Source: Paramoeba atlantica (Eukaryota > Protista > Discosea). From it: 64,000 nucleotides of DNA. Below are positions 32,057-64,000 of this stretch, piece by piece. Both the position numbers and the translations under genes were made by a program. Every line of letters starts with the position of its first letter. The first letter of the stretch is position 1. The notes beneath the pieces are model-generated. The model saw only the letters and a program-made list of their open reading frames with translations, did no database searches and was not told the origin of the DNA. The stretch spans positions 186,001 to 250,000 of the forward strand of contig CDRNVI010000011.1 of the NCBI GenBank assembly GCA_977017575.1, given 5' to 3'.

Positions 32057-32284
32057 AAAAGCGGATTATCTGTGTTTTAAGCTGGGTAAGACAGAAGTGT
32101 AAGAAGATTTTCCCATGACTATTTTTTCACATTCGATTTTAATGAAATGAAGGAAAATTTAAGCTTATCAAACAAAGCGTTTGCAAAAACTAGAGTTGAG
32201 CTAACAAGGGTTGGGCTCGGTTTAACTTCTCCTATCGTTTTAGCTTGTCTTACAGATAATTTGTCTTTACTCCCTTCATTTACT

Positions 32285-32872
32285 ATGGTGAAATCTTCGA
32301 AGGCATCGGAGAATCCGATGCGCCAAATCAAAATTGAAAAGCTCTGTATCAATATTGGTGTTGGGGAATCTGGTGACAAGCTTACAAAGGCTTCTCGCGT
32401 ACTTGAGCAGTTGTCGAGTCAAAAGCCCGTACACGCCAAATCGAAGAAAACCATTCGAAGCTTCAGCATTCGTCGAAACGAAAAAATTGCTGTGTACGCC
32501 ACAGTACGAGGCGAGCGTGCTCGGGAGATCTTAGAGCGCGGACTGAAAGTCAAGGAGTTCGAGCTCTATGCAGATAACTTTAGTAACGAGGGCACTTTTG
32601 GGTTTGGAATCAGCGAGCATATTGATTTGGGACTTAAGTACGACCCCAGCACAGGGATCTATGGAATGGACTTCCACGTAGTGTTGAAACGCCCAGGCAC
32701 TCGTGTCAGTCGTCGACGCCACGCCCCAGGGGTTGTTGGCTTGCACCACCGAGTAACGAAGAAAGAAGCGCAGGACTGGTTCAAAAAGGAGTTCGATGGC
32801 ATCCTCTTGAAGAACAAGCCTGTGTCGGAGCGACCCAAGAGCAACTGGAAAGGCAAAAAGGGGAAAAAATAA
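32285..32872 (+). CDS. RPL11: 60S ribosomal protein L11 (uL5)
   Basis: [27 protein letters not shown] and [20 protein letters not shown] motifs. ATG at 32285. Confidence 0.98.
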
Positions 32873-33140
32873 CCACTATGAAGGGAGTTAGTGTTAAGAT
32901 CAAGAATGTCGAAGTGTTGCAAAGTCTTCTTAGGATTTGATTAGGAAAATGTATTGTTTTTCAAATGGAAGAGAACACTAAACACGATACCATTATAAAT
33001 TGTTGACTAGCATTATTGGCTAGGACATTGGAATATTCCTTTTCAATGAGCATCGAGGTTCATAAGCAGATATTATTTTATCCTTTCGGTCACGGGGGCC
33101 AATGATAATCTATATTTTATCTTATTCTTACTATTTGCAT

Positions 33141-34517
33141 ATGACTGACTTCAAGCAAACTGACAGAAACAGTGAGAGTGTTCGCACAGCAGCTTTCTAC
33201 TACGGAGCAGGTGACTTTCCTTTATCGCACGTCATATACGATATCAAGCACAAAATTGTGTCACAAGGTGTACGACTAAACAACCAACAACAGCGAATTC
33301 TTTCTCCACAGGATCGATATGTCGTTCTTGTTTCGCACAAAGGCAAAGCTTCTTGTCTTGAAATACGGGGAAATGAAGAAGAGGTTTTGCCTATCGCTTC
33401 TCAGTCGAAATTAGAGCTGACAAATGCTGAAAAAATATCATCCGATTTTCCTCACACGTTTGATAATTCTGCATGCTCCGAAGACTCAAGCTTTTGTGAT
33501 CTTGTGGATGTGCATACCTCGCACAGAAAAGTGGATATCCCGGGACCTATGGGTCATCTTTCCACTTTTCAATGGTTTATCAAAGAGTGTGTGGGTGATG
33601 CGTCATCGTTAACAGCACTTTACTTTAGTTCTCATGCCAAAGGTTTGCATCTTTTTATGGATGAGGGTGTACATGATGTGAGTCAGGCTCTGAGCATCCG
33701 TGATATTGCCGATACTCTGCGCGCACTTGGTCCTCTACCCCACCTAAATGCTATTTACTTTGATGCATGTTGCTTAGCTCATATTGAAGTACCAATGCTA
33801 TTCAACGGTATCTGCCCTTACAATGTTGCTTTTGAAACTTTCTGTCCATGGGAGGGGCTTATCTCATACGATAATATGGTACATGCATGTGCACAGGATA
33901 TTGCGCGACAACACATAGAGCGATATGAATCAAGAGAAATGCTTCCTGATGAAGACCCTTCCGATGTCTCAGTGCTTCGCACCGAATGGGATCCTTCAAT
34001 TTTCAAAGCTCTTCTTCAATTACTTGTTTCAAAGGATTTGTTTCAAGATATAAGGGCCAACCCTGAATATCCATATCATCAGAATCTTGACGATGACGAT
34101 CCACCCTTGTTTATACCTTTTTTTGAGGATAACTCAAAGAAGTTCTCCTTGGGAAACGAAATTGGTACTCAATTGGTTCTGTCACCTCCTTACGACTACG
34201 AAATAAGAGAATGTACAGAAAGTAATACCATACTACCCGACTCCTCCGGGCCGAGACCTCGGGGAGATAATCCAAACGTTAAATATATTTGCGTCCCTCC
34301 TCACGCGACTTATGATATTATATCTGCGTTATCAGACATACCTGCGCAAGACACACGCTATAACGACGCACAAATGTTAAAAAAACGTTTTGCAGAAAAA
34401 ATTATTTTTTATTTTCGTACATCACGTCATCACAAACTTCGAACCAATGGTGTGGCGATACGTCATAGCATCATGCACGACAAACTGTGTGCGGCTGGTG
34501 ATACCGTTTTCAAGTAA
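33141..34517 (+). CDS. Clostripain-family (peptidase C11) cysteine peptidase-like protein
   Basis: ALYFSSHAKG (His) ..MDE..LSIRDIADTL..AIYFDACCLAHIEV (Cys) ..VAFETFCPWEG follows the C11 HG..FDAC.M...EV..ASE...P..G pattern. Confidence 0.65.
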   Translation: MTDFKQTDRNSESVRTAAFYYGAGDFPLSHVIYDIKHKIVSQGVRLNNQQQRILSPQDRYVVLVSHKGKASCLEIRGNEEEVLPIASQSKLELTNAEKISSDFPHTFDNSACSEDSSFCDLVDVHTSHRKVDIPGPMGHLSTFQWFIKECVGDASSLTALYFSSHAKGLHLFMDEGVHDVSQALSIRDIADTLRALGPLPHLNAIYFDACCLAHIEVPMLFNGICPYNVAFETFCPWEGLISYDNMVHACAQDIARQHIERYESREMLPDEDPSDVSVLRTEWDPSIFKALLQLLVSKDLFQDIRANPEYPYHQNLDDDDPPLFIPFFEDNSKKFSLGNEIGTQLVLSPPYDYEIRECTESNTILPDSSGPRPRGDNPNVKYICVPPHATYDIISALSDIPAQDTRYNDAQMLKKRFAEKIIFYFRTSRHHKLRTNGVAIRHSIMHDKLCAAGDTVFK

Positions 34518-34873
34518 ACGTCAGCGATGTTTGTAACCAGTCCGTTTTTAAGGCTTAAACAACTAAAATGCGAAAGGTTGCCGAAAGGTTCCTTCTTTGA
34601 CAACTCCGAAGCACGTACACATAAACCTGAGGTTTATGTGAGGTTACCTCTATTCTTATTTGATATTATTTCACGCTTGCGCCTTGTTTTCCGTTTAAGA
34701 GAGGGTGGATTATCATATCCAGTGCACCAAGTTATCATATCCAGTTCACCAAAAGTTTTTAGATTATCATATCCAGTGCACCAAAAGTATATTTTTACAA
34801 TTTCAATTTACATATCCAACTTACTTATTCAATTTAGACATTTCTATTACTCGATTTTTTTCCTTCCTTCGTC

Positions 34874-35672
34874 ATGACAAAGTATAAGCGGCTCAGTGAA
34901 GGAGAGAGACGCACAATACAAGAGATGTTCGAGGCGGGAGCCACGCGACGTGAGATCGGCACGGCTATCGGAAAATCACATAGCACCGTTAGCCTTGAGC
35001 TGGCCCGAAACGAAAAACGGGGTCGGCGGTACGAGGCCAGCCGTGCTCAGAGAGTATCCAAGAGACGCTTGGAAAGCAAGCCCGTGCGCCCTCGCATGAT
35101 CTCTGGGCCCGTGGAGCGCCACATCAAGAAGCGCTTAGGGCAGCTTCACAGTCCAGAACAGGTTGCCAACACTTTAGTTGTCGGGACGCAAGAGGCGTCG
35201 GTATGGGGATTGAGAAGCAGACCTCGTGGAAGGGCATAATCACTCAGGCTACATTTTGACTTTGTGTGAGCGGAAGAGCCGATTCCTCGTTCTGCGTGTT
35301 CTGCGATCGAAGCATGCCGAAGAAGTGGCGAATCAAATCATCAAGGGATTAAGAAAGTACAAAACTTTTACTATCACTTATGACAATGGAACGGAATGTA
35401 CAAAGCATGAAAGAGTGAATGAAAAACTGGGCTGTAAATCCATTTTCTGTGCCCCGTATCACTCGTGGGAAAAGGGGGCGGTGGAAAATTCAAATGGTCT
35501 TACCAACATTCGCCAATATCACAAGGTGAGTGAGTCGTTTGAGACACTGAGCCTCAAAGAGGTGAACAAGACAACCAAGAAGTTGAACAAACGGCCCAAC
35601 GGGCAAACCATTGAAGAATATACCAATCATTGTAGCATCGTACTAAACCCTGTTCCGGGATATTGTGCCTAG
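34874..35672 (+). pseudogene. IS30-family transposase, internally deleted, frameshifted, with in-frame TGA
   Basis: N-terminal HTH YKRLSEGERRTIQEM..REIG..IGKSHSTVSLELARN..Y.A..AQ..SPEQVA. Second frame RKRRRYGD*EADLVEG..ILTLCERKSRF..TITYDNG..CAPYHSWEKGAVENSNGL..RQY..LNKRP, with D(53)D(33)E spacing. Confidence 0.92.
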
Positions 35673-36013
35673 AGCCAGTTATTGTGCAGGGGGGGCACAA
35701 TAAGTGGAAACGACCACTATTATTGTACCCCCCTCCAAGATATGGCGCCGCGAAGCGGCGCCTCACTTTTTTTGCGGGTTTTTTTTCTCATTTTCTCGGA
35801 ATTAACGTTGCTGGTTCAACAACGCACTCGTTAAATAGAACTATTTCTGCATATGAACATGTTTGTCCGTAAAAAAGGCGCCGTGAAGCGGCGCCAATTT
35901 TTTTTTACCCTTTTTTTGGTTTTTTCTAATATTTAGTTATTGTGCCTAGAGCCAGATATTGTGCCTAGAGCCAGTTATTGTGCAGGGGGGGCACAATAAC
36001 CCGGAACAGGGTT
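35646..36013. mobile_element. MITE-like insert nested inside the IS30 element
   Basis: TA|AACCCTGTTCCGGG(A/T)TATTGTGCC inverted termini |TA, a 43-bp direct repeat near both ends (35661-35703, 35957-35999) and two GGCGCCG(C/T)GAAGCGGCGCC hairpins followed by T-tracts. Confidence 0.7.
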
Positions 36014-36496
36014 TAGGTTCATTTTTTTTTATTCTTGGTGCACTGGATATGAGAAAATGTTTGACACCTGGAACGGGATGTAATTTTCGCGTTTTTGGTG
36101 CACTGGATATGATAATCCAGGGAGTAATATTTTACTACTCATAGATCCCCCCTTAGGTATTCAAATCTTGTAGAGCATATTCTTGAATATTGAAGTCATG
36201 TGTTAACATGACTCCTGTCTTAATCGTGTCTTAATATAAATCATTTTTTTTTATTTACTGTCTCCCCAATTTACTATTGAGTGCTCTACCCCCCCCCCCT
36301 ATTTAGTGTTGAATTTTAGACTTGGCACGCACGTATGAGTAATCCTTTTTACCAAAGAATGGCCGTAATCACTTCACGCCCGTAATCATACCTATTGAAT
36401 GAATACCGATGCGTTGATCTATTTTCGTTTTCCTGGACATTAGCTTCATGCAACGCGAATTTTTACGATTTTCTTGGTCACTAATGTTCGACTCGA

Positions 36497-37984
36497 ATGG
36501 ACTCTAGAGTATTCTTCGTAATAGGATCGACAGGCTCAGGTAAGTCGAACTTCGCCATGCGATTGGCTCAGCATGTTTTCTCCACTTTTGATCGTCCTTG
36601 CGAGATAATATGTGCCGATGTAATGCAAATGTGTCCGGGACTACCCATTGCATCCAACAAACCTACTGAGGCTGAGTTGCAAAAGGTGCATCATCATTTT
36701 TTAAACTCTATTCAGAACGGTGCAATCAATACCTGTGAAGTGGATCTAACTTACGAAGTCAGCGTTCATAGCTTTGTCAACAAAGCTCTCCCACTCATCC
36801 GAAACTTGCTGAACGATGGTAAGACCCCGATTGTATGTGGCGGTACCAACTACTACGTACAGGCTCTCATGTGTGAGTCCATAATTGAATCTACAGCAGT
36901 GAGCTCATTTTCTTCATTAGACTCTCTTTCAGCAAGTACCGAACAAGGGACTTACATGACATTAAAAAATTACTCTACTTTACGGGATTTGCTTCAAAAC
37001 AATGCTGAAATGCCTGACACATATTACAGACGTTCATTGTTCCGCATACTTGATGCACTTTCGGCGAAATCGCTACACGAAGAATTATCCCACGTAGATT
37101 CTAATATGGCAATTCGATGGCACCCGAAAGATACGAGACGTATTCGGCGGAGCTTGGAGGTCTTCTATCTATCTCGAGGGAAGGTAAAACATAGCGACCA
37201 TATTATTGAGCAAAGCGAGCATGATCCAATACGATGGATGAACCATGTAACATTTTGGTGTGATTTTGACGGTGATGAACATATGGACAATGTCATTAGG
37301 GAAAGAATTAATTTCATGGAAACTCGCGGACTACAGCGTGAAGTGGAAGACTATTTTCTTCTTTTGAAAAATCATCCTTTATTGAAAGATCACGTTTTGA
37401 ATAGAAGAGCATTAAACTCAGGAAGTCGATTTCCGTTGCTTGAAGCCATTGGTTTTAAAGAATTTCTTCCGTTTCTCCGGTTGAAATGCTTGGACATAGA
37501 AACAGAATTTGATATACCATCAGCGAATATAAATGCGTGCGAAATATGGCAATCGTGTACAGAAGATTTATATAGGGCTACACGAAAATATGCGAAGAAG
37601 CAACAGCAGTGGATACGTCATCGATTCGCCACGCACCCTTATGTAAATCTTTTTAGAGTTATTAATGAGCGTGGCGCCTCCGCTTTTAATCATAGAAATC
37701 TAATTTTGACTCCAAAACAAGCCTTTGCTTTATCCTCTTTGCCCTTGCCGGACATTCTTACCCATGAATATCGCCATAAGATCCTTCCGGGTAGAGCTTT
37801 CGAACAAAAGCAATGCGTCACAACTTGGTGTGATGTGTGTCAAAAGTCATTGAGAGGGCCTTCTCAGGTGGAAGCGCACATGAAATCACGAACGCACCGA
37901 ATGCTTGTGCGGAGACATAAGCGACAAGAAGAAAATCCTTTTTTACGCAAATTCAAAACTGGGGTGCAGTCTTCAACTTTTTGA
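36497..37984 (+). CDS. TRIT1: tRNA dimethylallyltransferase (isopentenyltransferase) with C-terminal zinc finger
   Basis: IGSTGSGKS, EIICADVMQ..GLPIASNKP, PIVCGGTNYYVQAL, HPKDTRRIRRSLE, AIGFKEF, TRKYAKKQ..W and CDVC..H..SRTH motifs. Confidence 0.95.
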   Translation: MDSRVFFVIGSTGSGKSNFAMRLAQHVFSTFDRPCEIICADVMQMCPGLPIASNKPTEAELQKVHHHFLNSIQNGAINTCEVDLTYEVSVHSFVNKALPLIRNLLNDGKTPIVCGGTNYYVQALMCESIIESTAVSSFSSLDSLSASTEQGTYMTLKNYSTLRDLLQNNAEMPDTYYRRSLFRILDALSAKSLHEELSHVDSNMAIRWHPKDTRRIRRSLEVFYLSRGKVKHSDHIIEQSEHDPIRWMNHVTFWCDFDGDEHMDNVIRERINFMETRGLQREVEDYFLLLKNHPLLKDHVLNRRALNSGSRFPLLEAIGFKEFLPFLRLKCLDIETEFDIPSANINACEIWQSCTEDLYRATRKYAKKQQQWIRHRFATHPYVNLFRVINERGASAFNHRNLILTPKQAFALSSLPLPDILTHEYRHKILPGRAFEQKQCVTTWCDVCQKSLRGPSQVEAHMKSRTHRMLVRRHKRQEENPFLRKFKTGVQSSTF

Positions 37985-38023
37985 TTTCACATCTTAAGCG
38001 ACAGCATTCTGTACTGCCGTATA

Positions 38024-39065
38024 CAGTAAACGTCACTATTCTCAGAATGCTCAGTTGTACGTTGACACAGAAAAAACGGCTTTTTTGTCGTTTTTCGTCA
38101 CTATTCTCAGAATTGGTCTGTTGAACGTTGACAGGCACTTTTTTATGAGGTCAAATCATAATTCTCATTTTTAAAAAAGAAAATGTTTTGCAAAAAAAAT
38201 GTTAGCAGCGGAGCAGCAGGCCTCTTTGGGTGCATAAAAATGACCCCCAGAGATCTCCCACTACCTCCTTGGTTTGCAGAGTCGCCGCTCTATCAGAAGA
38301 ACACCACGCAGTCAAACAGCAAGTTTTCCTATTGTGTATTAGCGTTTTGTTTTCAGAAAAACAAAGTTTCATTACTCGTAGTCACCTAAATCAGTGTTTT
38401 CATTGCTTTTTTTGGTCTCACTAAGACATTTGTGTGCCTTTCATGAATGGAAGAAGAGAAGGGACAACGATAAAAATGATCTCCAGTGATCCTCTGTGAC
38501 CCCCATCTATCTCCACCTACCTATATGTATACCCCCCACAGTAATAGAATCGATTTTGGACCATAAAGGTCAAATCCTTGTTACTGGGTGGGGTATGCTT
38601 TTTCGGTGGGCAAAGGCCTTTTTCGTTCATGAGTGCGTTGATTTTCTGTACAGCCAACCCAGAAACCACGCGATTCGCTACTGCACAACCACCCTCATCC
38701 CGTCCAGACACCCCCCCTCCAACCACCCTCCCCAGACAAATCCTTGTTACTGTGTGTCGGCCCAAAAATGGCGAAATCTCTGCTACTGGGGGGATCCATT
38801 ACTGGTGGAGTATACGGTATCCCCAGTGATTTCCACCGATCTCTCGCATACTCTCCAGTTAGTGAAGATGAAGCAGTGAGTCAATCGGTGAGAGAACGAA
38901 AGCGTTTTTTTTCAATTCTCATTTTTGAGTGTAAAATTGAATTGAACGTTGACACATGACCGAAGCTCCATTCTCATTTTCCAAGGTGCATTCTCATTTT
39001 AGCCATTTGTACGTTGACAGCCCAATTCTCATTTTTAGCGACTCTCAGAATAGTGACGTTTACTG
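38024..39065. mobile_element. CAGTA-ended (pogo/Tigger-like) non-autonomous element, family D
   Basis: TA|CAGTAAACGTCACTATTCT ... AGAATAGTGACGTTTACTG|TA perfect 19-bp TIR, with repeated subterminal (A/T)ACGTTGACA and ATTCTCATTTT motifs. Confidence 0.85.
38526..38817. mobile_element. Older diverged family-A MITE copy nested inside element D
   Basis: TGTATACCCCCCACAGTAATAGA ... TTACTGGTGGAGTATACGG|TA, collinear with 39066-39385. Confidence 0.7.
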
Positions 39066-49335: not shown

Positions 49336-50877
<1,542 letters not shown>

Positions 50878-51401
50878 AAATCTTTATTTTCGCTTTGTTC
50901 CACACTATATTGGAGAAGTCGTCCGTGCACCACTAAGAAAAGATATTAAGTAATGATACCACCAAGTAATGATCTTTATTGACTTTGGTTCATCGCATTG
51001 ACTTTCCCGCCTGCATGAATGGAAAGTTGAGGTTTCTTCTTTTTTCCGACCTTCATTGGTATTAATGAGAGATAGTACACTGTGGACTGTAGTATTGGTA
51101 AAAGACGAATAATAGCAGTACAAAACGTTATAATTCCACAATTGTCAGAGTTTTGCATTTTCAGCTGTATTAGTTCCGCGTTACGCATACTGGTACCCCT
51201 GTATACATGTGCTGGGCTTGACATTGTTCAGAGTTTCTTTCTTCAGACGCCACTACAAATATAGCACGAGTTTTTAGCATATAGATTTTTTTATATAGCT
51301 TTTAGTAAAAGCTATGAAGTCGGTAAAATTTACCGACTGTTTCGAAACCTTATACTACCATCACACAAACAGGCTTATTTTATTATTTTCTATATCTGTT
51401 T

Positions 51402-52439
51402 ATGCCCCGCGAAGCAGCGCTTTCTCTTTCCCAGCAAGAAGTTGCACTCTCCCAAAATTCTCAGCCATCCAAAGGATTATCCCAACGTACGATGCCTTTA
51501 GCTAAAGCAGATGTCAATGCGATTCCAGTTCTCAGTCAAGCAATCAAGGCTTGTCCTTCCCTTTTTCTTCAAAAAGAAAAGATTCTAACCCAATCCGTAG
51601 AACAGTCACAGCCGTACCTCTCTGCCTCCCCACAGGCCGACAAGCGACGACACGCTGATCCCCAGTACGCCGCAGAGTATATGAAAGATATTATGTCAAG
51701 TCTAAGACACGCCGAGGAACAACTTTCGCGCGACCCCTACTTGAGTCATCAACCGGAGTTGAGCGAAAAAATGCGAACCATTCTTGTTGACTGGCTTGTC
51801 GAGGTACACCTGAAGTTCAAGTGTCGGCCCGAGACACTCTTCCTTGCCGTCGATATTGTTGACCGATACCTCTCCGTCGCACGCACCACTCGATCTACAC
51901 TTCAGCTTGTGGGTGTTACCGCGATACTGCTCGCGGCTAAATATGAGGAAATATGGCCACCTGAAATTAAAGACTGTGTGTACATTAGCGCGAACACGTA
52001 CTCCCGAGAAGATATTCTCACTATGGAACGACTTATTTGTGGAGCGCTTCACTTCCGACTGACAACTCCGAATGTAATGCACTTCACATGCCGTCTGTTA
52101 GACGTGATGGACGCCGACACTTCATTGACACATGCCACCTTTTACTACTCGGAGATATCCCTACTGAGCTACGCGATGTACGGATATTTGCCGAGTCTAG
52201 TGGCTGCCGCCTGTGTGTATCTCGCATGTCGTACGCGGGGCCACACGGAGCCATGGACTCCTCTGATGCAACACTACTCGGGATACACTCTACCCGATGT
52301 CTTTAGTGTCGCTCAGCAGTTATTGGAGTACGCCCACGTGTTGCTGAGCAGCAAGTACACCGCGGTGAAACGGAAATATGATACGGATAAATACGCAAAT
52401 GCGGCATCTTGTTCTCTTCCACAGAGGGAAGATTTTTAG
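51402..52439 (+). CDS. Cyclin, copy 2 (chimera: N-terminus of copy 3, core and C-terminus of copy 1)
   Basis: Same cyclin box; N-terminus MPREAALS.. shared with copy 3 and C-terminus ..LPQREDF shared with copy 1. Confidence 0.92.
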   Translation: MPREAALSLSQQEVALSQNSQPSKGLSQRTMPLAKADVNAIPVLSQAIKACPSLFLQKEKILTQSVEQSQPYLSASPQADKRRHADPQYAAEYMKDIMSSLRHAEEQLSRDPYLSHQPELSEKMRTILVDWLVEVHLKFKCRPETLFLAVDIVDRYLSVARTTRSTLQLVGVTAILLAAKYEEIWPPEIKDCVYISANTYSREDILTMERLICGALHFRLTTPNVMHFTCRLLDVMDADTSLTHATFYYSEISLLSYAMYGYLPSLVAAACVYLACRTRGHTEPWTPLMQHYSGYTLPDVFSVAQQLLEYAHVLLSSKYTAVKRKYDTDKYANAASCSLPQREDF

Positions 52440-52816: not shown

Positions 52817-54358
<1,542 letters not shown>

Positions 54359-54882
54359 AAATCTTTATTTTCGCTTTGTTCCACACTATATTGGAGAAGT
54401 CGTCCGTGCACCACTAAGAAAAGATATTAAGTAATGATACCACCAAGTAATGATCTTTATTGACTTTGGTTCATCGCATTGACTTTCCCGCCTGCATGAA
54501 TGGAAAGTTGAGGTTTCTTCTTTTTTCCGACCTTCATTGGTATTAATGAGAGATAGTACACTGTGGACTGTAGTATTGGTAAAAGACGAATAATAGCAGT
54601 ACAAAACGTTATAATTCCACAATTGTCAGAGTTTTGCATTTTCAGCTGTATTAGTTCCGCGTTACGCATACTGGTACCCCTGTATACATGTGCTGGGCTT
54701 GACATTGTTCAGAGTTTCTTTCTTCAGACGCCACTACAAATATAGCACGAGTTTTTAGCATATAGATTTTTTTATATAGCTTTTAGTAAAAGCTATGAAG
54801 TCGGTAAAATTTACCGACTGTTTCGAAACCTTATACTACCATCACACAAACAGGCTTATTTTATTATTTTCTATATCTGTTT

Positions 54883-55923
54883 ATGCCCCGCGAAGCAGCG
54901 CTTTCTCTTTCCCAGCAAGAAGTTGCACTCTCCCAAAATTCTCAGCCATCCAAAGGATTATCCCAACGTACGATGCCTTTAGCTAAAGCAGATGTCAATG
55001 CGATTCCAGTTCTCAGTCAAGCAATCAAGGCTTGTCCTTCCCTTTTTCTTCAAAAAGAAAAGATTCTAACCCAATCCGTAGAACAGTCACAGCCGTACCT
55101 CTCTGCCTCCCCACAGGCCGACAAGCGACGACACGCTGATCCCCAGTACGCCGCAGAGTATATGAAAGATATTATGTTAAGTCTAAGACACGCCGAGGAA
55201 CAACTTTCGCGCGACCCCTACTTGAGTCATCAACCGGAGTTGAGCGAAAAAATGCGAACCATTCTTGTTGACTGGCTTGTCGAGGTACACCTGAAGTTCA
55301 AGTGTCGGCCCGAGACACTCTTCCTTGCCGTCGATATTGTTGACCGATACCTCTCCGTCGCACGCACCACTCGATCTACACTTCAGCTTGTGGGTGTTAC
55401 CGCGATACTGCTCGCGGCTAAATATGAGGAAATATGGCCACCTGAAATTAAAGACTGTGTGTACATTAGCGCCAACACGTACTCCCGAGAAGATATTCTC
55501 ACTATGGAACGACTTATTTGTGGAGCGCTTCACTTCCGACTGACAACTCCGAATGTAATGCACTTCACAAGCCGTCTGTTAGACGTGATGGACGCCGACA
55601 CTTCATTGACACATGCCACCTTTTACTACTCGGAGATATCCCTACTGAGCTACGCGATGTACGGATATCTGCCGAGTCTAGTGGCTGCCGCCTGTGTGTA
55701 TCTCGCATGTCGTACGCGGGGCCACACGGAGCCATGGACTCCTCTGATGCAACACTACTCGGGATACACTCTACCCGATGTCTTTAGTGTCGCCCAGCAG
55801 TTATTGGAGTACGCCCACGTGTTGCTGAGCAGCAAGTACACCGCGGTGAAACGGAAATATGCCTCATCAAAATGCGGTGAGGTTTCCGATCAGCCGCTCC
55901 CGGAGCTAAGCGATTCACTTTAG
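54883..55923 (+). CDS. Cyclin, copy 3 (unique C-terminus)
   Basis: Cyclin box with two amino-acid changes (S>L, C>S) and a distinct tail ASSKCGEVSDQPLPELSDSL. Confidence 0.92.
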   Translation: MPREAALSLSQQEVALSQNSQPSKGLSQRTMPLAKADVNAIPVLSQAIKACPSLFLQKEKILTQSVEQSQPYLSASPQADKRRHADPQYAAEYMKDIMLSLRHAEEQLSRDPYLSHQPELSEKMRTILVDWLVEVHLKFKCRPETLFLAVDIVDRYLSVARTTRSTLQLVGVTAILLAAKYEEIWPPEIKDCVYISANTYSREDILTMERLICGALHFRLTTPNVMHFTSRLLDVMDADTSLTHATFYYSEISLLSYAMYGYLPSLVAAACVYLACRTRGHTEPWTPLMQHYSGYTLPDVFSVAQQLLEYAHVLLSSKYTAVKRKYASSKCGEVSDQPLPELSDSL

Positions 55924-63158: not shown

Positions 63159-64000
63159 CTGTGACCCCCCCCTTTAATATGGACAGGGGGTATCCCCCCC
63201 CTTTATTATGGACAAATCCGACCGGGCGCCGCGCAGCGGCGCCAATTTTTTTTTTTGACGTACCCTTTTTTTTGTCTCTTTTTTTCTGTTTTTTAGGGTA
63301 TCTGTAGCTAGGTAATTTTATCAGCTTTCACATAGTTCGTCATGTTCATATATTTCAGTCATTTTTCAACCTAATGAATTCCGTGGAAGGACCCTTAACC
63401 TCTTGGATTAAGGCAACACCCCCAAAGCCACAGGTAGGTAATCCAACAATGTTGATTACAAATGAGCGCAATGTCCACGCTTCTTTAGATATCCACGTGA
63501 AAGAGAAAAGGGGACGAACTGAGCTTAATATATACGAGAAGCGCGAAATCTGCCGATCGACTCTCTCGGTAAAAAGAATCCGAGAAAAATACGGAATTTC
63601 GCGAAGCGGAGTATATGAAATCCGTAGCCACGGTATGAGCTACTTTCAAAAACTCATTGATCGTTCCATGGGGAGCAACCACAGGAGACTCCTCCCACCC
63701 TGGTTGATACGTGGAAAAAATTTCGACGTCCCAAAAGCTGTCTTACCACGCACGCGGTGGATCAGCTCTGCCAAAACGTAATGGAGGTATATCGGGAATT
63801 GCCTAATGCAGACAGGCATCTCATGTTCCTAAATACCGGACAGACGCAGTTGATGTTAGGCCTGGGCCGCGAGCCAAAACAGCATATTACATCGGTTCGT
63901 CGAATAGCCGCGGCTTTAATTTTTAATGGGCATTTTATCCTTGTCAATTTCCAGAGGTTTGGGCTAACTGTTTTCGACAGTTACGAAACATATTGTCCCT
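63159..64000 (+). mobile_element. Left part of a TA-flanked transposon encoding a CENP-B/psq-type HTH and, in the -1 frame, a Ulp1-like cysteine protease
   Basis: TA|CTGTGACCCCCCCC, duplicated CCCCCCCCTTTA(A/T)TATGGACA, GGCGCCGC-GCA-GCGGCGCC hairpin and T-tract. ORF KRGRTELNIYEKREI..SVKRIREKYGISRSGVYEIR. Frame 63661-64000 reads SCLTTHAVD..MFLNT..NGHFILVNF..LTVFDS. Confidence 0.65.

Follow-up and report, generated by a model that had tools for sequence, protein, structure and literature searches.

The subject of this report is a mobile element in a 64,000-nt stretch of DNA, here called the window, from an assembly deposited as Paramoeba atlantica (GenBank GCA_977017575.1, contig CDRNVI010000011.1, positions 186,001 to 250,000 of the forward strand). 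The mobile unit occupies positions 34704-36121 of the window on the plus strand, is 1418 bp long, and is a degenerate, non-autonomous element derived from IS30, a family of bacterial insertion sequences (IS). We consider it very probable that this unit is a dead, non-autonomous member of a transposon family in the nuclear genome of a kinetoplastid and that the transposase and the ends of this family descend from a bacterial IS30. An earlier note on this DNA, the original prediction, had described a complete IS30 transposon at 34706-36119 and had suggested that it might belong to a eukaryotic family derived from IS30. The suggestion of such a family is supported by the residence of multiple copies, the scores on the IS30 profile, the phylogenetic tree, and the distance of the bacterial matches.

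The transposase gene of the window copy is read in two pieces. The open reading frame (ORF) at 34874-35239 contains the Pfam domain HTH_38 (4.7e-13, residues 3-46), and its match to the NCBIfam IS30 profile NF033563 covers profile positions 1-65. The second ORF, at 35226-35672 (148 aa), matches positions 142-265 of the same profile with 115.8 bits, the curated cut-off being 80 bits. In the frame of this second ORF the translation reads GD*EADLV ... TYDNG ... WEKGAVENSNG ... LNKRP, and the IS30 motifs that had been named in the original prediction are thus present. The catalytic residues are encoded at 35220-35222 (D), 35382-35384 (D), and 35484-35486 (E), with exactly 53 and 33 residues in between. 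Thus both the N-terminal helix-turn-helix and the D(53)D(33)E core are as had been predicted, and the spacing of the core is common to the window copy and to P0152, an intact protein of the family. Scores of 245-251 bits on this profile were obtained for the intact ORFs, P0152 and P0287 (315 aa), P0274 (317 aa), and P0270 (330 aa), and the matches of P0152, P0274, and P0270 cover the full profile. The ORF of L002, a sibling copy on another contig, scores 183 bits.

The borders of the element were placed at 34704 and 36121 because the block of homology between two other copies, L007 and L090, stops at GG...GG and because the left end of the bacterial relatives is GGTGGATT straight after the duplication. 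On the left, this block runs one coincidentally matching base further. The true unit is therefore two bases wider on each side than the one first proposed. The GGG duplication that had been reported on both flanks has to be given up, as both GG pairs are part of the element and what is truly duplicated is GAG (3 bp). Neither GGG nor GG can be the duplication, since the GG pairs lie within the L007/L090 homology block and the outer 3 bp match in five copies. As had been claimed, the 25 bp at one end (34706-34730) are perfectly complementary to the 25 bp at the other (36095-36119), and shuffled sequence gave 0 matches. The sequence of this repeat is TGGATTATCATATCCAGTGCACCAA, its length is 27 bp when the non-complementary GG is counted, and an extra copy of the 25-bp repeat with one mismatch is present at 34760. 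The pattern across the copies is 3 bases, GG, (T/C)GGATT ... AATCC(A/G), GG, and the identical 3 bases. Duplications of 3 bp were found in five of five unambiguous protist copies, namely, GAG in the window copy, TTA in L002, CCT in L007, GAT in L090, and ATC in L008, in which the right GG is mutated to CG. By simple arithmetic the chance of five such matches is about 1e-9. The ends therefore have the terminal inverted repeats of about 20-30 bp and the 2-3 bp target duplication that are features of IS30.

The claim that the element is complete did not hold. Its decay was read against the sibling L002, which is about 95% identical in DNA (BLAST and alignment). The window copy has an internal deletion of 179 bp that shifts the frame and takes about 60 residues from the part linking the helix-turn-helix region with the first catalytic D, an in-frame TGA in the GDWEADL motif, and a 368-bp insert that is not in L002 and that is a miniature inverted-repeat transposable element (MITE). 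Beside the MITE, close to the gene's 3' end, there is an additional insert of 8 bp. A genetic code in which TGA is read as tryptophan is ruled out because the codon in L002 is TGG and the host genes have ordinary stops. L002 is dead too, with a GAA to TAA change in SWEKG. The window copy is unable to make transposase and can move in trans only, and it would be movable only if a related intact transposase still recognizes its ends. One intact ORF filling an element of about 1-1.4 kb, as is expected of IS30, is missing from the window copy and present in L007, L090, and L089. Because these relatives keep the intact single ORF, the window copy is a dead member of the family and not a non-member.

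The protein searches used the pieces of the window transposase and the 258-aa ORF of L002 as queries. Among 1.84 billion representative proteins, the 148-aa ORF of the window itself and a set of closer relatives were found, and all of those relatives that were looked up are on contigs of ENA assembly ERZ24900291. The element is multi-copy, as nine contigs of this assembly carry copies in addition to the window locus, the tenth contig. These copies are at different eukaryotic loci, their flanks are unlike, and each copy that could be delimited without ambiguity has a 3-bp duplication of its own. The copy in L002 is near a gene of the V-ATPase c-subunit type (Pfam ATP-synt_C) and a gene for an RNA recognition motif (RRM) protein, that in L004 is between the PIG-P and HSP90 genes with a kinesin gene nearby, and that in L007 has a leucine-rich repeat protein as its neighbor. 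Further copies are in L003, L005, L008, L089, and L090. Orientation relative to the neighboring genes is mixed, two copies being co-oriented and three opposed, and because of this read-through is not obviously required. In three samples sequenced with short reads, the depth of the element interior is several-fold that of the flanks, and the contigs have loose ends with different flanks. There are also intact copies that have moved recently. The copies in L007 and L090 are intact and 98.1% identical with unrelated flanks, and the search for intact copies of the autonomous type that had been recommended thus found two 315-aa copies, about 98% alike, at different sites.

Not all of the copies have the same build. 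In contigs of the three samples the left 90 bp of the element are kept and the sequence diverges at 34796 into unrelated sequence (GGAAATTCG...), which suggests that these contigs carry internally replaced, non-autonomous derivatives with the same ends. The copy at L008:3853-8480 has grown to 4.6 kb through inserted foreign DNA. An ORF of 733 aa lies in this insert on the opposite strand and has no recorded Pfam hit, and the ATC duplication at the ends of the copy still matches. A search for inverted repeats in L003 and L004 found no ends. The nearest metagenomic relative, L006, is on a contig of 1.7 kb in which no clear ends were found.

Bacterial relatives were collected by scanning one genome per prokaryotic species, in all 185,579 species genomes, which gave 557 relatives. 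The best of these are from Verrucomicrobiota (Verrucomicrobiales, Akkermansiaceae), followed by Planctomycetota and others. In the species genomes, full-length matches to P0152 are at most 45% identical and partial ones reach 50%, the best plasmid match is 45% identical, and outside the assembly none of 5.8 billion proteins exceeds 48% identity. The nearest bacterial proteins are 41-48% identical overall. Thus a nearly identical bacterial IS, which would have spoken for contamination, was not found, as nothing above 50% was seen among the plasmids, the proteins, and the species genomes. The ends of the bacterial relatives resemble those of the protist copies. A metagenome-assembled genome (MAG) of Verrucomicrobiae has three identical copies of 1214 bp that start with GGTGGATTCA and have the duplications CTG, ATA, and GTT. 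The copies in a Planctomycetota chromosome start with GGTGGATTCAAATTCCAAGTGCAAC, end with ...AATCCAAG, have 3-bp duplications, and likewise have outermost bases that are not complementary. In all, 3-bp duplications were found in six bacterial copies. The protist ends, GGTGGATTATCATATCCAGTGCACC, retain the bacterial terminal octamer GGYGGATT and the inner box AGTGCA(A/C)C. What differs is the number of inner repeats, since each end of the bacterial elements has a single copy of the innermost ~20 bp of the repeat and each end of the protist copies has two to three, with three copies on the left and two on the right in the window element, two and three in both L002 and L008, and two and two in L089.

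The tree was built by a quick search from the protist copies and 75 bacterial or metagenomic relatives. Seven protist sequences including the window copy form a protist-only clade, clade A, with a support of 100, and three form a second protist clade, clade B, with a support of 99. These two clades and a bacterial/metagenomic clade, whose 90%-identity cluster includes an Akkermansiaceae protein, meet at an unresolved node. When a single protist clade was imposed, the likelihood was higher than that of the free tree, and with a p value of 0.81 in the approximately unbiased test (p-AU) such a clade is not rejected. The protist copies form one or two clades. Identity between clades A and B is 43-45%, and among the subfamilies overall it is 43-76%. 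The ratio of nonsynonymous to synonymous substitution rates (dN/dS) was calculated for closer pairs only, as synonymous sites are saturated in the more distant ones. Between L002 and L008 it is 0.13 with dS about 1, and therefore the transposase was under purifying selection while these two lineages diverged. Between L002 and the window copy it is about 0.6, as expected of dead copies. Upstream of a clade B IS30-like ORF, at L005:1513-1975, there are two near-perfect palindromes with 86-88 bp per arm, and the ends of clade B seem to be built differently from those of clade A.

The host of the element, to judge from the sequence of the window, is a deep-branching kinetoplastid protist, and the locus is in its nuclear genome. 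All of the ORFs of at least 150 aa with recognizable genes in the window, 42 of 42, are on one strand, and they include genes for the DNA primase large subunit, cytosolic uL5, and RNA 3'-phosphate cyclase. Among solved structures, the dihydrolipoamide dehydrogenase of the window is nearest to the Trypanosoma cruzi enzyme, and its nearest named sequence is that of the prokinetoplastid PhF-6 (70%), followed by Neobodo (64%), Diplonema (63%), Trypanosoma brucei (63%), and Bodo saltans (61%). Compared with solved structures, uL5 is too conserved for placing the host. Rfam and tRNA scans of the window found no RNA genes. As had been stated in the original prediction, the element is between two co-oriented host genes, both on the plus strand (Table 1).

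The locus is represented by a second public contig (L001, ctg3946l), which is 99.69% identical over 6447 bp (window 32227-38672) and has the insertion with both flanks, the deletion, the stop, and the MITE in common with the window. The two differ at 19 positions and one gap in these 6447 bp, and this difference of 0.3% is consistent with two haplotypes or with two assemblies of one organism. The reads also contain an allele with a 3-bp indel at 34699. The stretch was found in the short-read contigs of the three samples, and a 1970-bp short-read contig bridges the right junction with no differences. Of the two junctions, whose confirmation had been recommended, both are present in the window and in the second public contig, and the right one is also bridged by a short-read contig, but the left one is unbridged in the short-read contigs. 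The claim of genuine nuclear residence is upheld by the second contig, the bridged right junction, the copies among eukaryotic genes, and the nested MITE.

If the element were an IS of a prey or co-cultured bacterium that had been misjoined to protist DNA, then a transposase of bacterial type and a left junction that no short-read contig bridges by at least 31 nt would be expected, and both are seen. However, the insertion is present with both flanks in two contigs, the right junction is bridged without a difference, more copies are among eukaryotic genes, a TA-duplicating MITE is nested in the element, and no bacterial sequence exceeds 50% identity, and hence such contamination or a chimeric assembly is next to impossible. 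That a single transferred IS never transposed in the eukaryote and that its copies arose by segmental duplication has a precedent, as this is the origin of most eukaryotic IS607-like copies (PMC3673617). Here, each copy is flanked by unrelated sequence and by a 3-bp duplication of its own, the homology between L007 and L090 stops at the element ends with no flank homology seen beyond, and loose ends with different flanks occur in three samples, all of which make this explanation highly improbable. It is also hardly credible that the element is a host gene domesticated from an IS30 transposase. Although it is co-oriented with the host gene cluster, its reading frame is broken three times, the inverted ends and the target duplication are kept, and it is multi-copy with polymorphic sites. 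The alternative that carries some weight, though it too is unlikely, is that bacteria donated the element several times, for example with clades A and B entering separately. The free tree is a three-way split between the two protist clades and the bacterial/metagenomic clade, and the distance between clades A and B equals their distance to the bacterial proteins, but the tree with one all-protist clade is the more likely and no bacterial sequence is nested in either protist clade.

Several observations weigh against a kinetoplastid family descended from a bacterial IS30. At the left junction the short-read contigs enter the repeated end by 24-26 bp only and none by 31 bp, and no empty allele of the insertion was seen in the short-read contigs of the three samples. 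No RNA evidence of expression was seen in the sequence runs and contigs examined. The only older run under the species label contains almost none of the stretch, and all of the copies were taken from a single assembly and a single sequencing study. The outermost GG/GG of the element is not complementary, which is unusual for inverted ends, and one bacterial relative is likewise. In a sixth copy, L089, the palindromic target AACGTT leaves the duplication ambiguous, and the tree resolves the bacterial sister group poorly.

Descent of a kinetoplastid transposon family from a bacterial IS30 nevertheless remains the reading that we favor, and how the family may have moved can be outlined from what is known of IS30. 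The helix-turn-helix of the transposase would bind the repeated end motifs, and the DDE core would cut and join with a 3-bp stagger as in bacterial IS30. Bacterial IS30 transposes through circular or abutted-end intermediates, and the protist family may use such a route. No end-to-end joint of 36121 to 34704 was found among the contigs, but contigs cannot show rare molecules. After its insertion the window copy lost 179 bp, gained a stop codon, and was hit by the TA-duplicating MITE. Kinetoplastid genes are transcribed as long polycistronic units and have no introns. With this kind of expression a promoter of its own may be needless, and a bacterial ORF could have settled more easily. We would go further only tentatively, and with more doubt than confidence, to propose that the family is a new superfamily, 'IS30EU', that it is still active, perhaps by the copy-out-paste-in circular route of bacteria, and that it settled thanks to polycistronic, intron-free expression. 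It is called still active because two intact copies that are 98% alike are at different sites. Such a route would be a replicative DDE mechanism, which is not known to have been established for eukaryotic inverted-repeat transposons.

Table 1. Features of the element and its flanks in the 64,000-nt window
Feature	Position	Strand	Evidence
Upstream host gene, weak clostripain/C11-like match	33102..34517	+	
Target-site duplication, left copy, GAG	34701..34703	.	Identical 3 bp at 36122-36124
Left inverted repeat, GG and perfect 25 bp	34704..34730	+	Complementarity; terminal octamer GGTGGATT same as in Verrucomicrobiae and Planctomycetota IS
Two subterminal direct copies of the inner ~20 bp of the inverted repeat	34732..34784 (34732-34752, 34764-34784)	+	
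Transposase gene, N-terminal part (HTH_38 and start of IS30 profile), separate reading frame	34874..35188	+	
Junction of the 179-bp internal deletion, CAAG microhomology	35189..35192	+	Alignment with L002
Transposase DDE catalytic part	35190..35643	+	NF033563 115.8 bits; spacing 53/33
In-frame TGA for the W codon of GDWEADL	35211..35213	+	L002 has TGG
Nested 368-bp MITE, inverted ends, TA duplication at 35644-35645 and 36014-36015	35646..36013	.	Empty site in L002
Two 8-bp GC hairpins of the MITE, each with a T-run behind it	35744..35895 (35744-35762, 35877-35895)	+	
Inner part of the inverted repeat, subterminal copy on the right	36034..36055	-	
Right inverted repeat, perfect 25 bp and GG	36095..36121	-	Complementarity; L007/L090 block
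Target-site duplication, right copy, GAG	36122..36124	.	
Downstream host gene, eukaryote-type tRNA isopentenyltransferase, C-terminal zinc finger	36497..37984	+	Pfam IPPT 5.5e-43 and zf-met

The nested MITE occupies the 3' end of the transposase gene and has inverted ends of 24-27 bp. Its empty site is kept in L002 as CGTAC-TA-GGTTC, and IS30-like forms without the MITE are present among the short-read contigs of the three samples. In these samples the ends of the MITE are covered about 30 times as deeply as the flanks. The hairpin inside the MITE has an 8-bp GC stem and a 3-nt loop with the T-run behind it. The original prediction was right in describing a nested MITE with a hairpin that recurs at 63225, since L002 has the empty site and a third copy of the hairpin is at 63225-63243, inside another transposon. 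This other transposon (window 63159-64000) has C-rich ends (TGTGACCCCCCCC...) and carries the GC hairpin and T-run of the MITE. The motif seems to be common to unrelated elements of this genome. Homopolymer runs of at least 10 C are found repeatedly, both between genes and at the ends of transposons (36280-36300 and 63165-63215). Elsewhere in the window, a unit of two genes, the 507-aa dihydrolipoamide dehydrogenase and a 345-aa ORF, is repeated in tandem at 49354-52439 and 52835-55923.

Links between IS families and eukaryotic superfamilies are few, and the literature that we searched names none for IS30 (PMC10045372, PMC3673617). Gilbert and Cordaux in 2013 compared 48 IS representing all 24 IS families with 431 eukaryotic genomes and found only IS607 (PMC3673617). 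The links known to Kojima and Bao are IS630, IS1380, IS1595, ISAzo13, IS256, IS5/ISL2, IS3, and IS481 (PMC10045372). The absence of IS30 from their list agrees with the original prediction, which had placed IS30 outside the known links, and they predict that there are more 'ISxEU' groups (PMC10045372). What marks a group of this type is found here, namely, multiple nuclear copies, ends and duplications of their own, one prokaryotic IS family as kin, and diversified subfamilies. No published eukaryotic IS30 lineage, including one from kinetoplastids or Prokinetoplastina, was found in the literature, a search that did not cover Repbase and Dfam. Kinetoplastids were thought to be without DNA transposons until 2021, when Merlin relics were described in Bodo saltans and Perkinsela (PMC8101967), and the present family adds to kinetoplastids DNA transposons that are sharply bounded and recently mobile. 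Both the enzyme and the DNA ends, with their terminal octamer, inner box, and 3-bp duplication, are traceable from bacteria to the protist, and the transfer and remodelling are therefore unusually readable. The family is also a system for testing the function of an IS30-type enzyme in a eukaryotic nucleus. The value of the window copy itself is that of a dated insertion, common to two haplotypes or assemblies and later hit by a MITE.

The closest known systems are the bacterial IS30 elements, here unnamed IS from MAGs of Verrucomicrobiota/Akkermansiaceae and Planctomycetota (L020-L022, L039-L041) and, more distantly, those of the IS4351 type. The protist family is like them in having one ORF of about 315-330 aa, HTH_38 and D(53)D(33)E, a GGYGGATT terminus, 3-bp duplications, and a length of about 1.1-1.4 kb. 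It is unlike them in its multiplied inner repeat, its decayed copies, its nested eukaryotic MITEs, and its nuclear-gene neighbors, and above all in its host, which for IS30 is a prokaryote and here is a kinetoplastid-like eukaryote. The IS-derived eukaryotic families already described (PMC10045372) are likewise multi-copy protist families with inverted repeats, autonomous and non-autonomous members, and the duplication length of their bacterial parent, but their parent families are others than IS30 and their hosts are parabasalids, animals, or plants rather than kinetoplastids. The IS607-like eukaryotic sequences are also bacterial IS that came into eukaryotic nuclear genomes by horizontal transfer. 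However, IS607 encodes a serine recombinase, and its eukaryotic copies are without inverted ends or duplications and have spread mostly by segmental duplication (PMC3673617). The Merlin relics are, like the present family, DNA transposons of kinetoplastids, but they have no detectable ends or duplications (PMC8101967), whereas the IS30-type family has sharp ends, duplications, and intact copies that have recently moved.

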